DNA of 63,296 nucleotides, the filler included, from Reticulomyxa filosa (taxonomy: Eukaryota; Protista; Foraminifera): assembly GCA_000512085.1 (NCBI GenBank). It is 24 parts of 24 records of this genome, joined end to end, with 100 filler letters (N's around TTAATTAATTAA, not from the genome) between each part and the next. Parts side by side here need not be neighbours in the genome. Positions count along the whole stretch, not along the records: positions 1,583 to 4,391 come from ASPP01020828.1; 23 more parts are not named here. One strand, given 5' to 3'. Below, piece after piece: positions 1,583 to 8,960 of this stretch (its first letter is position 1; each line of letters opens with the position of its first letter). A program made the position numbers and the translations under genes. Under the pieces are notes generated by a model. The model was not told the DNA's origin. It made no database searches and saw only the letters and a list, made by a program, of their open reading frames with translations.

Positions 1583-3452
1583 CTTTTTCTTGTTCTTGTT
1601 CTTGTTCTTGTACAGTTTCATATTCTTCTTGCACTAGGTCCGGCTCTGGCTCTACCTCTATATCTTGGACTGGTTCTTGTATTTGTATCGTCTCTTGATC
1701 TGGCTCTTGTTCTTGTTCTTGATCTTGATCTTGTTCTTGTTCTTGCTCCTGTTCCTGCTGTTGTTCAAGCATCAACTCTTGCTCCATGGACACTACTGCG
1801 CTTTCAGCGAGCGTTCTTTTGTTGCGCTTGAAGCTGGTCTCTTGGGACGGCACCACAGGACTTTCTGCGAATGAATCTTTGACAGGACGGAGAGGAGGAG
1901 GTGAGCACAGCACAGGGGTAAGTATAGAATGTCCGTTGTTGGGATTGGAATGCTTGTCCGAAGCATAAAGGGGGTTGGGTTGTTGACTCCACTCCTCCAA
2001 TGCAGGATCGTCGAATACGTCAGTGCTGCAAGGAGCACGCAGTTGGTTCAACTCATCTAGTCGTAGCAAGGATAGGTATTGTCCATTTTGAATCGTCGTC
2101 ACTGCGTCTTTCCACGATATATTTTGAAGACGAAAGTTCAAATCTCCCAATAAAAACTATACGCATATATTTGTATATACATATATACGTATACATATAT
2201 ACATATATATATATATTTGTATGTATAATAAGACAAAAGGTAATTAACCAAAGCATGATAGGTGTGTGTAAAATCGATTTGTGAAAATCCCATGCCCAAG
2301 CCATTGATAATCAAGACAATATCTTCGATGCGATCGCGCAAGAATTTGTGAGAATAGCTTGCGGCCAAATGGGCGCACACGAAACAGAGCGACGTGCGAT
2401 TGACCTTAAACGATATTCCGACGGCGCCCTTGTTTCCATACAAATTGCCAATTCCAGTGCGAGTCGCCCTCGCCTGGATTCTCCTGTGATCGATTGTGTG
2501 GACTATGTTGTGCTTCACAAGGATCACCAAGTAGATTTCACGCAAGCGTCGATACTTCAAAATTGTAAATGTGTTTTTGCCAACAATGTCGAGCAGCAGA
2601 TCGTTTATTTTACTGGCATCCATTTTCATTTCTTGCATTCCTTTTATTTATTTATTTTAAAAAGCCACTATATATATATATATATATATAATATCATATT
2701 ATACACATGCATGTACATATATACATGTGTACATACGTGTACTGTGGGATAAGTATACGTTTGGACGTATACATACCAAAAGCAAAAATGTCAATTTGTT
2801 TCAAATCTTTAATGTTGGCATGTGATTCAACGGTTGGATGATCGGCATTGACAGTCGAGTTTTTGTGAGGCGACTGAGTGGCGGACCCTTCTTGAGCATT
2901 TGCAGAGTCGTGTTTGGGAGAGGCTCCATCTCCGGAGGAAGCGGTATCGCAACGAATATTATTGATATGCACATAAGGATCAGCGCAGGTTTCATCGGCG
3001 ACAAAGTGTTTGTATTGACGGCCAGCGTTGTGCAATTCGAAGCGGAGCCACTCTCGAAACGTGATCTTGTTGTCGCTGTCCTGATAGAGGCCCATGTTGA
3101 AAGTACTGACAAAGACTTGATACTCTTCCAGAGTATGGCATTGGTGGAGACTGGACTCGATATCGACGACAAACTCTTGTGTAGGTAAGTGGCTCTGCAG
3201 TTCGTGATGCAACTCGCTATTGATCTCCAGCAGCTGTCGTGTTATCAACGTGGTATTGCTCGCGTCCGCGGCGACACTGCTTAAATGATGATGATGATGA
3301 TGATGACGAGAAGAGAGCCTATAGAGCGATGCTATTCCACTGTTACTGCCACCACCACTACCAGTGCTGCTGCGCTGATTCAGGCGATTCTTATCTTCGG
3401 ACATATTTGTGCTTCGGCGTTCGATTATTAATGGCGCCATCAACGACTCGTT
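1583..3452 (-). CDS. Inositol polyphosphate 5-phosphatase (INPP5/EEP) domain; exons 3452-2777, 2640-2249, 2156-1583 (3' truncated)
   Basis: VFVSTFNMG; DIFAFG|MQE restored by intron 2641-2776; GNKGAVGISF..NRTSLCFVCAHLAA; HAL|FLLGDLNFR restored by intron 2157-2248; LRLDELNQ. Confidence 0.92.
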
Positions 3453-3565
3453 CTTTTTTTTCACAAAAAAAAAAAAAAGGAGGGAGTGAACAGAAATGAA
3501 CAAATCAAATGTGTGCTACCTCCCCTCCTCCAAGTTTCACATGCATGCAATAGACAGCAACACAC

Positions 3566-4353
3566 TCAAAACACTTGAGTTGGAATGCCGCACTGATCGC
3601 TCACAAAATGGACTCGATTGTCATTGTGATCGTTGTCGCTGCTGTCATTGCTGTTTTTATTATTGCTGTTATTGCAGCTGGACAGTGGCGGGCCCGAAAG
3701 CAAAGCCCAAGTGTGCTTCGGACGATCTGCAACTGCGGACAGGCTCGGTTTCTCTTCAATGCCTTCCAACGCGCTCTGAAATTGGGGCTCCGTTTCCACA
3801 CGCTTCGTCGTCGGCAGACACTCGCCCGAGTCCATTCGCAACACACGGTCGTCTCCTACCTGGCGGGTCAACAGAGGCTGCTTTTCGGTGGGCGAGATCA
3901 AGGGACACCAGTACAGTATCAGAGGGCTGTGACGAATGCGTGTACGTATACTCGAGTTATTGAAGAACAGCAACGTATTTAATGCACCTTTTTTTTTTTT
4001 TTTGTTTGTTTGTTTTGATTAAAAAGAGAAAAAGAGGATTGTAATATATTTTTAAAAACATACACATGTATATGTGTATATGTTTTTTTAAATATAATAA
4101 AATAGAACAATGAACCTTGCAAAGGTGATAGAATGACGTGTATATACTTGAGCCACACGCCAATGCCTAAGAGCTGACGATAGGGCTCCAAAATTCCCCA
4201 GAATCGACACAGGGCAATGAGCACGACATAAAGAATCAACTCTTTTTGCAGCATTCGGTAGCGCTTGTACAAGATCGATTGGTGATATTTCGCGTTATAC
4301 GTAGCCATTTGTTGATTGAACAATTGTGATTGAAGCACGCCGTTGTCATTGTT

Positions 4354-4391
<38 letters not shown>
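3566..4391 (-). CDS. C-terminal TM6-TM7 of a cAMP-receptor/GCR1-like 7TM GPCR (exons 4391-4116, 3987-3575); probably the same gene as the INPP5 domain
   Basis: KELILYVVLIALCRFWGIL (TM6). After removing intron 3988-4115, HVILSPLQG|ALNTLLFFNNSSIR resembles the PLQGxxNxxxY TM7 signature. Confidence 0.72.
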
Positions 4392-4706
4392 NNNNNNNNN
4401 NNNNNNNNNNNNNNNNNNNNNNNNNNNNNNNNNNNTTAATTAATTAANNNNNNNNNNNNNNNNNNNNNNNNNNNNNNNNNNNNNNNNNNNNGGGAGCCAG
4501 AAAGACCATTCATCGTTATTGATTATAAATTACCAAGTATTCTGACAATTTTTGAAAATAATGAATAAGTATTGCAAAAAACATGGATTAATGGATGCGC
4601 AAATTTTTGCCAACTAATTGATAAAAAAAAAAAATAAAAGTTAAAATATTTTAATTTGTTTATTTCTTTTTTTAAATAAAATAATGTTTCATAATTAAAA
4701 AAATAG

Positions 4707-5234
4707 GTTCAACAAAAAAGAAAACGAAAAAAATAATAAATACCGATAAAGGTAATAATAATAAAATGCCTGATAAAAATGAATCAGCTGCACAAAATGA
4801 CCTATACGAACGCGATATTGCACTAACATGCAATGGCTGCAGAACGTACAACCTAGATGTATTATGAATGCAGCTCCTTTAGTGAATGTAATACTCCAAA
4901 TTTCTGGATATATGATATGGAGTGGAGCTAGTGTTGGTATGATGATTGGATATCCAACTGTTTATGGTTGGAAGCTGATCAAATTAATAAAGATGACAAC
5001 ATTTTCAATATAAAGGTTTACAAGATGTTGAAAATGGAGTCATTTAAAGATGCAATGTTGGAGCTTGTACGAATAACAAAATATGCAAAGACACTTGCTC
5101 CTAATGAAAAAATTTTAAGAGAAACTTCAGCACTCTTAAGTCTGAAGAAAAAAAAACAGAAGAAAGTGATGAGTTTTGCGATGGGGGGCAATGCAAAAGA
5201 AAAAGATTCTAATTTTTTTTTAATTGTTGGGTGA
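4707..5234 (+). pseudogene. Degraded coding fragment containing a CxxC...C zinc-finger-like stretch
   Basis: Protein-like peptides (LTCNGCRTYNLD/YYECSSFSEC, ...KDAMLELVRITKYAK) broken by stops and frameshifts. Confidence 0.35.
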
Positions 5235-5912
5235 TTGGAGATAATTGATTATAATATTTTTTTTAATTTTGACAATATTTAAATTTATTTGTGCGTTGAC
5301 ACATTTTCCAATATTCGATTTTTTTATTTGTTATATAATATGTTTTTATTTTTCAATCACTAAATTATCTTGGACGCTGGTTTTTGTGATATTTTCATAA
5401 AGTTTTTTGCAGCAAAATGTACAGGAACGTGCGAAATTGATCAGAACTATGCGAAATTGCGAAAAACGTGCGGACATGCGAAAAACGTGCAAACATGCGA
5501 AAATTTGCAATTATACAGATTATTTTTTATTTTTTCCAAATTAAATTTTAAAAAAATATTAATTGTGGGTTTTTTGTCCAACACTTAGCCAACATTCATC
5601 ATTTCCTCCATTTTTTACTGCGACAGCGTATACAACACTTCGCAAAGACGATGGAATATTGGACTTGTTGTCATCGCTTTGTTTCTCTTCGTTGCTAATT
5701 TTACACACACACAACAAACATCCTTGATATTGACATAATTTAATAAATTGAAAAGAACAAGTTTACCTCAAATTCATAAATGTTTCATCAATAACAGGTT
5801 GATATCCATATTNNNNNNNNNNNNNNNNNNNNNNNNNNNNNNNNNNNNNNNNNNNNTTAATTAATTAANNNNNNNNNNNNNNNNNNNNNNNNNNNNNNNN
5901 NNNNNNNNNNNN

Positions 5913-5950
<38 letters not shown>

Positions 5951-6456
5951 ATTTGATTGCATTTTGTGGTTCACAGCTATACCAGTGACGAATAAACTCA
6001 CCAGTCGTTTTTGTCCCTCCTCAACTCCCCTTCCTCTTTCTTTTTCTCCTTTCTCTTTTTCCTTCGCCTCTAAACCAACTTGCACACAACCAATAAGAAT
6101 AACAATAACAGTACGCAATTTACAAATCATTAGAATTGTGTTCAAATCCTAAAAAATCTGGCAATACTCCCTACGTATCACAGCAAACGTATTATGAATA
6201 TATGTGAGAGAGAGTGGGGGGGGGGGAGGATTTTTAAAAAAAACAAACCTTTGAATGTTTTGTGATGAAATCAGCATTGTATCGTTCATGATTGATAGAT
6301 CGATGCTTTGGTGTCACTGGGGCAGTTTGGGGTGCTCGTTTTGGAATGTCAAAGCCCCCTTTTTTCTTTTTTTGGTACACGTGCACAGCGTCATCGCACT
6401 TTTGTCTTTGTTGATCTTTATCTTTGTCTTTTATCTTTTCTTGATCATGACGACCA

Positions 6457-6869
6457 TTACTGGGTCCTCTGCCGTGGTCGTCGCAGCGAACCCTGAGCCT
6501 GGTGACACTCTTGGGCAGCAGCAGCGGCCAGCAACGAGGTCTGTTCCAAAAGTAAATACGAGCTAGGTCGGTGATGAGTCGAAGAGTGCGTTTTCAAGAA
6601 GCTGGAGCCAAAGCGAGAAGAAACCGAGTTTCGGATATGCGAGCGTGGATGATTGCTGTCTCGATCAGGGTTGGCTGCAGTGCACGACTGACGTTTGCGG
6701 TTTGTCGTGGACGCGTTGTGATGGGGATGCGCCATATTTCCTTTTTTAAAAAACAATTGCGACAACTCGCAGTTACCACGATTGCGAACAGTTGCAATCG
6801 AGTGGCGATGTTTTTTTGCAATGATATCAGAGAAATGAGTTGCTTGTCTTGCAATGTTGTCAGTATTAC

Positions 6870-6912
<43 letters not shown>

Positions 6913-8960
6913 GCAATCCTTATGCTCAAATACTGGTGTCATTGTGACGGCAGGACGTATACCAATAGCAATTGTCTTTCGACGTGGTTGAAGGCACTTT
7001 TCTTTTGGAGAAGCGATTTCGACGAAATCGGCCTTTTGCTCTGCTTCCTCGAAGGAAGGTCTTTTCTTTGGATGAGTGTCATGATCGCAGTGGGCCTCGA
7101 CGTTGCCAGTGGCCACACTCCTTCGCTCGGTGACAGAGCCTAGAGGGGCACACTCGTTTGTGTCGTCCAAATGGATCCATCGCTGACGAATTTTGGAGGA
7201 CTTTTGTTCCACGAATTGCACCTGCACTTGTCCACTCGTGTCGTCCAATCGACGAATGGTACCTTTCATCCATCCAATGTACTCGCCCACTCCAGAGGCA
7301 TTCGTCGTCATCGGATTTACATCGATCGAGTCTCCAATGTTTAAATGTTGCATTTCTGTCCTTGTCACCGGTCCTGTGTATTGTATATTGTATATTGTAT
7401 ATTGTATATTGTATATTGTATATTGTATATTGTATATTGTGTATTGTATATGTATGCACGTACGCATATATTGTGTTAACTCGCAGAAATACTCTTCGCC
7501 TTTGCAAAGCGATACAGCTCTTTGACGCGATGGCTCTGTTCATTCCACGTTTCGTCCCAATACACGTAGCGGATCAATGTATTGTCGTTATCGTCAATGC
7601 GCAGAATTTGTCCCAATTGGTACCTCCCTACGTGATCTCTGTGGTCGATAATGTCTCCCACTCGAAGCTGTCCAACTTCTGACAATTCCATGTGCTTCAT
7701 AAACCGATCGCTACTAAGGTCACATGTCTCTGCCGACACATTAGCATTAGCATTAGCATTAGCGTCAGTATTGGCATTGACATTGACATTGACATGGTTG
7801 TCAAGAAGAACAAGATGCATCGCACAATGCGTGGCCTTGTCTGCTATATCATGTTGGTTGTCCATGTCCATTACAACTGTGGGGGTGGTAAGGGAGCTGG
7901 CAGTTTCGATAGGGGAGACCCCATTGGGATTGATTTTGAATTTCAGGTTAGGATTTGCATTTACAATTATATTGCCATTATTATTATTATTGCCATTATC
8001 ATTATCATTATCATTATCATTATCATTGTCATTATCATTGGCATTGGCATTGGTGTTGGAATTGCAAGCAATAACCGCAGTTTTCTTTTTTTTCAAAGGT
8101 TTGGTGTTTGGAGATTCGACTTGATTAGTTGCTTTGGCACAGTTTTGTCGGCGATGAATACGACGAGCGAGCGATTGGAAGAAGGCGGAAAGATGTGTCG
8201 GAGACGCAAACTGGTCGGTCCATTGATTCTGTTTCGCCAACGTGATAAAGTGCATTGCAGCGCAGAACTCGACTTCGTTCCAATGCGGAGAAGAAGAAGA
8301 AGAAGAAGTGGTCAGGTCCGATTTGCATAAAAGCAAGAGCTGAGACAAGAGATGCGAATCCAATCCACTTTTCGAAAAAAAAAGAATGGGCCTTTTGTTC
8401 GGGCACGCAGCCATTGGCATGTGCGGACTGGCAATAGTGGAAATAGCGCAGAAATTGGTCCAAGTGTTTGGTATGTATTTTGGGGATTTTCAGAGCCTTC
8501 AAGGCTTTTGAGGGAGACACGCGGCCATTTCGATTCCGATGGGCTCGGTCCATTGAAATGGGTTGGATTCCGACACTCCCTTTGCGTCGAGCGTAATTGC
8601 AGCTTTCTTTCACCACAATGTGACTAAGGCGTCGTTTCTTCATTGTCTCTTCTTTTTCTCCTTTGTTTGGTTTGTTATTTTCATTTTCATATACATATTC
8701 ACGCACATTGCGTTTTTCTTCGTTGTCATTATCATCACTATCTTCTTCTTTTTCTTCTTTTTCCTTCTTCTTCTTCTTTCTTCTTCTTCTTCTTCTTCTT
8801 CTTCTTCTTGCTCTTGTTGTTCTTCATCGTCAGCTCTTTGATACTTGTCTTGCTCCGTCGTGGAAGGCACTGCAATGTATTCATCTAAGATTTGTCGAAA
8901 CTCACGCATTTTTCGCAAATGCTCATTGTCCCCATTGTCATTATCATTATCATTATCATT
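6457..8960 (-). CDS. EH-domain plus tandem Tudor/Agenet-like domain protein (5' truncated, spliced, homopolymer frameshift near 8380)
   Basis: EH-like: FHYCQSAHANGCV...FFSKSGLDSHLLSQLL...EFCAAMHFI. Tudor-like: LRVGDIIDHRDHVGRY...IRYVYWDETWNE and LNIGDSIDVNP...WMKGTIRRLD...WIHLDD...APLGS. Intron about 7374-7480. Confidence 0.65.
7379..7447. repeat. Intronic heptamer tandem repeat (TATATTG)n, about 9 copies
   Basis: Directly visible; lies in the intron between the two Tudor-like exons. Confidence 0.9.

Follow-up and report, generated by a model that had tools for sequence, protein, structure and literature searches.

Fusions of GPCRs (G protein-coupled receptors) with an inositol polyphosphate phosphatase, known as GPCR-INPPs among the so-called GPCR-bigrams, have been described from oomycetes and Nannochloropsis (PMC5784254; PMC6033456), and according to the GPCR-bigram survey of van den Hoogen et al. 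2018 they occur in these organisms only (PMC5784254). Reticulomyxa filosa has in turn been reported to possess a GPCR-PIPK (RpkA type), as has Bigelowiella natans (PMC5784254), and in the literature covered R. filosa is credited with this fusion type only. The locus studied here is the complete contig ASPP01020828.1 (2,809 bp) of the R. filosa assembly GCA_000512085.1, which occupies positions 1583-4391 of the window, i.e. the whole stretch of 63,296 nucleotides (filler included, 24 joined parts) that was analysed. On the basis of sequence comparisons, the contig most probably represents the middle of one minus-strand R. filosa GPCR-INPP gene encoding a cAR/Git3-like seven-transmembrane (7TM) domain, a linker and an INPP5 phosphatase domain, with a probability that we put at roughly 0.85. 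The occurrence of this receptor-enzyme type also in Foraminifera, as a new lineage for a known architecture, is well supported by the relatives described below.

Like the GPCR-INPPs of oomycetes and Nannochloropsis, the deduced product would combine an N-terminal cAR-like (Dicty_CAR/7tm_2) 7TM domain and a C-terminal inositol polyphosphate phosphatase in one polypeptide, but it differs from them in its foraminiferal lineage, in a very long low-complexity linker, in two large inserts splitting the catalytic domain, and in an ERNxD motif with RI for RN. With the GPCR-PIPK of R. filosa it shares the fusion of a cAR-like GPCR and an enzyme of phosphoinositide metabolism, on fragmented gene models, whereas the enzyme is a 5-phosphatase, opposite in chemistry to the PI4P 5-kinase. 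GPCR-PIPKs are marked by an LRxGI linker motif. The catalytic fold family is that of synaptojanin, SHIP and OCRL-INPP5B (PDB 7a17, 6dlg, 1i9y, 3mtc), with which exon 4 aligns at E 2e-11 to 7e-7, its NKGAV and SHLAA-type motifs being conserved, but these enzymes are soluble or peripheral, are recruited by SH2, Sac1, PH or RhoGAP-like domains, and have no integral 7TM domain.

Receptor and phosphatase in single reading frames of related loci

Three independent environmental loci contain a single uninterrupted open reading frame (ORF) in which the transmembrane helices TM5-TM7, the linker and the first 5-phosphatase motif follow one another. In the first of these (L002, a TARA scaffold), one 6.4-kb ORF (1693-8115) comprises TM5-TM7, the linker, the INPP5 domain in full and then a C-terminal region, and TM1-4 ORFs are located upstream of it. 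In the second (L003, also a TARA scaffold), a TM1-4 ORF that passed two profiles, 7tm_2 with 34.3 bits and Dicty_CAR with 26.7 bits, is followed by a single ORF with TM5-TM7, the linker and the motif FITTFNM, and then by the remaining INPP5 sequence; the third (L005, from a Logan assembly) is organised like L003, including the TM1-4 ORF upstream.

When compared with the single L003 ORF by BLASTP, exon 1 of R. filosa aligned with residues 64-117 (E 2e-11), exon 2 with residues 138-179 (E 2e-6) and exon 3 with residues 453-481 (E 9e-6), which makes exons 1-3 colinear on this ORF, and exons 4 and 5 aligned with the downstream L003 ORF (tblastn). A metagenome scan with the public R. filosa gene model (P0001, described below) gave no match. 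The initial annotation had joined the two apparent ORFs of the contig into one gene of a foraminiferan rhizarian. The single gene is now supported by the relatives with receptor and phosphatase in one ORF, by the colinearity of exons 1-3, and by the GenBank model ETO13100.1, which joins exon 2 to exons 3-5; the host lineage, that of R. filosa, was likewise correctly stated.

Receptor part

The upstream exons had been taken for TM6-TM7 of a cAR/Git3-like GPCR, an assignment which was upheld by homology to protein P0291, to a Bolivina argentea transcript (P0171) and to a 7TM profile (A1) of four proteins. The BLASTP alignment of exon 1 residues 30-80 with P0291 ended exactly at SPLQ (E 2e-9), and P0291 itself passed GPR_Gpa2_C (25.7 against a cut-off of 21) and Dicty_CAR (22.5 against 21). 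Exons 1 and 2 were similar to positions 191-228 (E 2e-8) and 254-271 (E 1e-4), respectively, of P0171, which covers 7tm_2 positions 5-249/250, and in hhalign exon 1 was aligned to those columns of profile A1 that represent TM6-TM7, with a probability of 91%. The Pfam 7TM families used were Dicty_CAR (PF05462), 7tm_2 (PF00002) and GPR_Gpa2_C (PF11970).

An AlphaFold model of the relative P0171, which describes that protein and not the R. filosa exons, reached a pLDDT of 71.8 and a pTM of 0.75, and its structural matches were GPCRs only (adhesion, class B, Frizzled and class A), with probability 1.00 and TM-scores of 0.6-0.75. The protein atlas gave, as a lead only, GPR_Gpa2_C clusters with a score of 0.86.

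Phosphatase domain

The identity of the downstream part as an INPP5 catalytic domain was confirmed by Exo_endo_phos2 and solved 5-phosphatase matches in exon 4, with the motifs intact. Exon 4 matched Pfam PF22669 Exo_endo_phos2 with E 4.9e-16 and 59.6 bits (curated cut-off 27), and its PDB matches were synaptojanin-1, SHIP1/2, SPsynaptojanin, INPP5B and OCRL (E 2e-11 to 4e-4); the exon is 50-57% identical to proteins P0002-P0005. For exon 5, the Exo_endo_phos2 match was weak (E 0.0011, profile 172-234/288), and tblastn to L002 and L003 gave 56-57% identity over 42-43 residues. There was no Pfam match for exon 3 alone, and no match for exon 5 alone in the PDB sequence search. The motif residues found on the contig are the N of STFNMG in exon 3, the E of GMQEM, the H of CAHLAAS and NKGAV in exon 4, and the D and N of GDLNFR in exon 5. 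We take the N (TxN), E (QE) and H (HLAA) to have metal or catalytic roles, as is general knowledge for the INPP5 family, and they were aligned with synaptojanin-1. The two signature motifs of the family read GD(L/F)N(Y/F)R and P(A/S)W(C/T)DR(I/V)L, and its catalytic His is that of SDH(R/K)P.

Between YQVFVSTFNMG and DIFAFG, exon 3 contains a low-complexity insert of ~115 residues. In the relatives, the catalytic domain resumes with FVEGPIxFxPTYKF, WCDRILW and SDHRPVF after a low-complexity insert of ~200-400 residues, and WCDRILW and SDHRPVF are carried by P0002-P0004.

Very large low-complexity inserts split the INPP5 domain in P0004 (L002 1864-8115), P0003 (L003 5468-8824) and P0002. The first insert of the relatives is located between the TFNM strand and GAQE (~600 residues in P0004), and the second, of hundreds of residues, between DELxxLRAP and FVEGPIxFxPTYKF. 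The replacement of Asn by Ile in the ERNxD motif, where RN reads RI, was present in all five foraminiferal-clade sequences; the R. filosa site is RDRIED in exon 4 (~2330-2345), the corresponding site of synaptojanin-1 is KERNED, and the Palpitomonas GPCR-INPP keeps Asn. Within the gap, presumably an intron, that separates the exon with FITTFNM from the INPP5 exon after it, L003 (4843-5235) and L005 (2703-3077) have an opposite-strand ORF (both minus) of ~125-130 amino acids, which is acidic and lysine-rich in L003 and could represent a nested gene or a chance ORF.

Gene structure and public gene model

The coding sequence lies entirely on the minus strand, and consists of five exons and four short introns (Table 1), with the gene open at both contig edges. 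Exon GC content is 0.38-0.52, compared with 0.17-0.24 in introns 1, 3 and 4. The exon 1 frame is open up to the contig edge, with homology support to ~4323; the terminal (AAT)n repeat (4348-4391) could either encode Asn or belong to an intron.

Table 1. Predicted exons and introns of the GPCR-INPP gene on contig ASPP01020828.1 (window coordinates).
Feature	Position	Strand	Content
Exon 1	4116-4389	minus	intracellular loop 3 with Asn run, TM6, TM7 to SPLQ and base 1 of the Gly codon
Intron 1	4115-3988	minus	128 nt, phase 1, GT...A15-AG, GC ~0.17
Exon 2	3575-3987	minus	TM7 end, conserved juxtamembrane stretch (LFFNNSSIRTRI), poorly conserved GC-rich linker ending GIPTQ
Intron 2	3574-3453	minus	122 nt, phase 0, GTGTTT...T13GTGA8G, GC 0.38; in-frame stop 3568-3566 inside
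Exon 3	2777-3452	minus	linker (His7 tract, Ser/Gly-rich), first INPP5 strand and motif YQVFVSTFNMG, insert, DIFAFG
Intron 3	2776-2641	minus	136 nt, phase 1, GTATGT...AAATAAAAG, GC ~0.24
Exon 4	2249-2640	minus	INPP5 catalytic core: QE, GNKGAVGISF, CAHLAAS
Intron 4	2248-2157	minus	92 nt, phase 0, GTTAAT...GCGTATAG, GC ~0.18
Exon 5	1583-2156	minus	GDLNFR motif, DELNQLRAP, then Gln/Glu-rich low-complexity insert running off the contig

Intron 2 is the one whose removal would join the receptor part to the phosphatase part. On the minus strand, exon 2 ends in GIPTQ with CAA at 3577-3575, immediately followed by the donor GT at 3574-3573; if left unspliced, the frame continues past CAA with V and F codons into TGA at 3568-3566. 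The tract GTGAAAAAAAAG ends at 3453 (AG 3454-3453), and AAC at 3452 opens NESLMAP. The coordinates given for this phase-0 intron in the initial annotation, from the CAA codon and donor to the acceptor and the enclosed stop, were thus all exact. Its acceptor was said to be of the same A-tract style as those of its neighbours, and an A-run indeed stands directly before AG in introns 1-3.

As had also been proposed, removal of the neighbouring introns restores conserved motifs (junctions marked here by a slash). Intron 1 removal results in SPLQ-G-ALNTLLFFNNSSIR, i.e. the TM7 motif SPLQ/GALN, which is uninterrupted in L002, L003 and the Bolivina P0171; removal of intron 3 gives FAFG/MQEM, matching P0001 and the relatives, and removal of intron 4 gives HAL/FLLGDLNFR, matching P0001.

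Directly before the terminal AG, three of the four introns have an A-run (A15-AG, T13GTGA8-AG and AAATAAAAG) instead of a pyrimidine tract, and intron 4 ends in GCGTATAG. Such A-run acceptors may be characteristic of introns in R. filosa.

When exon 4 was used as the query of an exhaustive search of proteins, it matched with 100% identity a protein of 610 amino acids (P0001 = ETO13100.1), which is labelled 'hypothetical protein RFI_24275, partial [Reticulomyxa filosa]' and carries PF22669. This model already contains the junctions of introns 2-4 (GIPTQ/NESLMAP, FAFG/MQEM and HAL/FLLGDLNF). The view that the intron 2 splice was hidden from annotation was consequently abandoned, since the identical splice, joining GIPTQ to NESLMAP, is in the GenBank model. 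ETO13100.1 begins at an internal Met (ATG 3835), and lacks exon 1 as well as the initial 51 residues of exon 2, the parts that bear the TM6-TM7 membrane helices. The unannotated portion is therefore the receptor part, rather than intron 2. Because the model has neither the membrane part nor a GPCR label, RFI_24275 is missed by domain-based surveys.

Phylogeny of the fused phosphatases

A maximum-likelihood tree was computed for 43 INPP5 domains, 13 of them GPCR-fused. The foraminiferal INPP5 domains formed a clade with support of 100/100, nested in an 11-row clade of GPCR-fused INPP5 domains only (support 86/88), and their nearest neighbours were INPP5 domains from environmental proteins with a GPCR fusion. 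The approximately unbiased (AU) test did not reject a topology that unites all 13 fused domains in one clade (p 0.287). Several of the exon 4 matches carry Dicty_CAR/7tm_2 upstream of the phosphatase, among them a protein deduced from a Palpitomonas bilix transcript and ending in a C2 tail, and the Plasmopara halstedii protein P0257, annotated as phosphatase and GPCR, was recovered in the searches. The initial annotation had looked to relatives of like architecture and to their phylogeny: the relatives do carry the fusion, but a sister relation to the oomycete GPCR-INPPs was not resolved.

The P. bilix protein A0A7S3DGN3 (P0135), transcript-derived and 826 amino acids long, is comparable in combining Dicty_CAR/7tm_2, Exo_endo_phos2 and C2. 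Its TM7 motif SPAQGFFN resembles SPLQGALN of R. filosa, and a short C-terminal stretch (C2 region) aligns with the foraminiferal relatives (BLASTP E 1e-6); the Palpitomonas protein differs in being compact, with no large inserts. Pfam C2 gave no match on the C-terminal regions of the foraminiferal relatives.

A0A7S3DGN3 is labelled only 'C2 domain-containing protein', and is a GPCR-INPP outside stramenopiles and Rhizaria.

Tentatively, and with slightly more doubt than confidence, GPCR-INPPs could be regarded as having arisen early in eukaryotes, with members in Rhizaria (Foraminifera), Stramenopiles and Palpitomonas, rather than as peculiar to stramenopiles; those of Foraminifera would then form a distinct subfamily, whose catalytic domain tolerates inserts of hundreds of residues and which has a C2-like tail.

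Alternative readings

Several observations weigh against one fused GPCR-INPP gene. The contig bears TM6 and TM7 only, TM1-5 being predicted upstream of its edge, and at 1583 it stops short of the final third of the catalytic domain, to which the second signature motif (WCDRIL) and SDHRPV belong. Profile searches had been suggested for the receptor and the phosphatase; the Exo_endo_phos2 match to exon 4 was obtained, but no Pfam 7TM family matched exon 1 or exon 2 alone, the exons being run singly with the TM7 motif split by intron 1. The splicing of all four introns in R. filosa is predicted from the genomic sequence. In the INPP5 tree, the placement of Plasmopara (long branch) and Palpitomonas was not resolved, and the link of the foraminiferal clade to other GPCR-INPPs had moderate support.

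The fusion may be real with intron 2 ends other than those given here, e.g. with the donor TTT/GTGAGC at 3604 or the acceptor AG at 3447, which would change a few linker residues; we consider this unlikely, although it is the best of the alternatives. Three donors (3613, 3604 and 3574) and two acceptors (3453 and 3447) make up six phase-0 in-frame combinations, five of them in addition to 3574/3453, and the frame alone leaves the junction unfixed. Because the linker around intron 2 is non-conserved, homology cannot choose between these ends, and GTGAGC at 3604 is, from general knowledge, nearer to the general eukaryotic donor consensus. The public model, however, uses 3574/3453, and the A-run-AG acceptor at 3453 is like those of introns 1 and 3.

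Less probable still is a truncated or decaying copy, in which R. filosa would keep only a TM6-TM7 anchor or a pseudogene fragment and have no working 7TM receptor. The two helices of the contig are consistent with such a copy, as is the protein search with the Bolivina 7TM domain for a TM1-5 partner in R. filosa, which returned only environmental fragments and a Stentor protein, in an assembly that is highly fragmented (PMC5784254). Against this stand a frame that is open to the contig edge, the edge being an (AAT)n microsatellite and thereby a typical assembly break, all exons intact with conserved catalytic motifs, and upstream 7TM exons in all three relatives with enough sequence. The R. 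filosa gene, as read here as a GPCR-INPP, would be predicted to include TM1-5.

Two adjacent genes, a GPCR ending at TGA 3568-3566 and a soluble 5-phosphatase starting from ATG ~3440-3438 (MAPLII...) after a spacer of ~125 nt, are suggested by a stop two codons past the proposed donor, an ATG five codons past the proposed acceptor and the less intron-like composition of intron 2, which with GC 0.38 is well above the 0.17-0.24 of introns 1, 3 and 4 and so less AT-rich, but they are highly improbable and were rejected, as TM7 tail and first INPP5 motif share one uninterrupted ORF in L002, L003 and L005, exons 2 and 3 are colinear with the single L003 ORF and spliced together in ETO13100.1, ~125 nt is, by general knowledge, very short for a terminator and a promoter in a large genome, and R. 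filosa would have to split within ~125 nt what its relatives keep in one ORF.

Proposed function and significance

In the proposed GPCR-INPP, removal of the four short introns, the 122-nt one included, would give a fused product in which a long disordered cytoplasmic linker joins the 7TM domain to an INPP5 domain interrupted by low-complexity inserts. The 7TM part would anchor the phosphatase at the membrane, and ligand-dependent changes of the receptor tail might alter the access or activity of the enzyme. Its target would be the 5-phosphate of PI(4,5)P2, PI(3,4,5)P3 or soluble inositol phosphates; we infer PI(4,5)P2 or IP3 as the substrate and a direct coupling of receptor to enzyme. The C-terminal C2-like region of the full-length relatives may add membrane binding.

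The contig, the full-length environmental relatives, and transcripts of Bolivina and Nonionella together place the GPCR-INPP architecture in Foraminifera, and the Palpitomonas transcript places it also outside SAR (stramenopiles, alveolates and Rhizaria). Since R. filosa has been credited with a GPCR-PIPK, it may hold both the kinase-coupled and the phosphatase-coupled receptors of the proposed PIP2 cycle, which becomes testable in a free-living amoeboid cell with fast reticulopodial motility. If GPCR-INPPs are indeed old, the turnover of 5-phosphoinositides under direct control of a receptor would be an ancestral way of signalling, with GPCR-PIPKs as the counterpart in the same organisms.

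Minor features of the contig

Microsatellites are found at both contig ends: an (AAT)n repeat (4348-4391), which the open frame reads as a run of Asn, and (CTTGTT)n repeats (1583-1611 and 1693-1766), which with related units give a Gln/Glu-rich tract when read along the coding strand. These repeats are the likely reason why the assembly breaks off, and the gene is cut, on either side. The His7 tract of the exon 3 linker corresponds to a perfect coding-strand (CAT)7 repeat (3285-3306). Nowhere on the contig is the GC content higher than in the linker portion of exon 2 at 3683-3882 (0.57-0.63), which is overlapped by long antisense ORFs on the plus strand (3575-3982 and 3496-3963), most likely by-products of composition.

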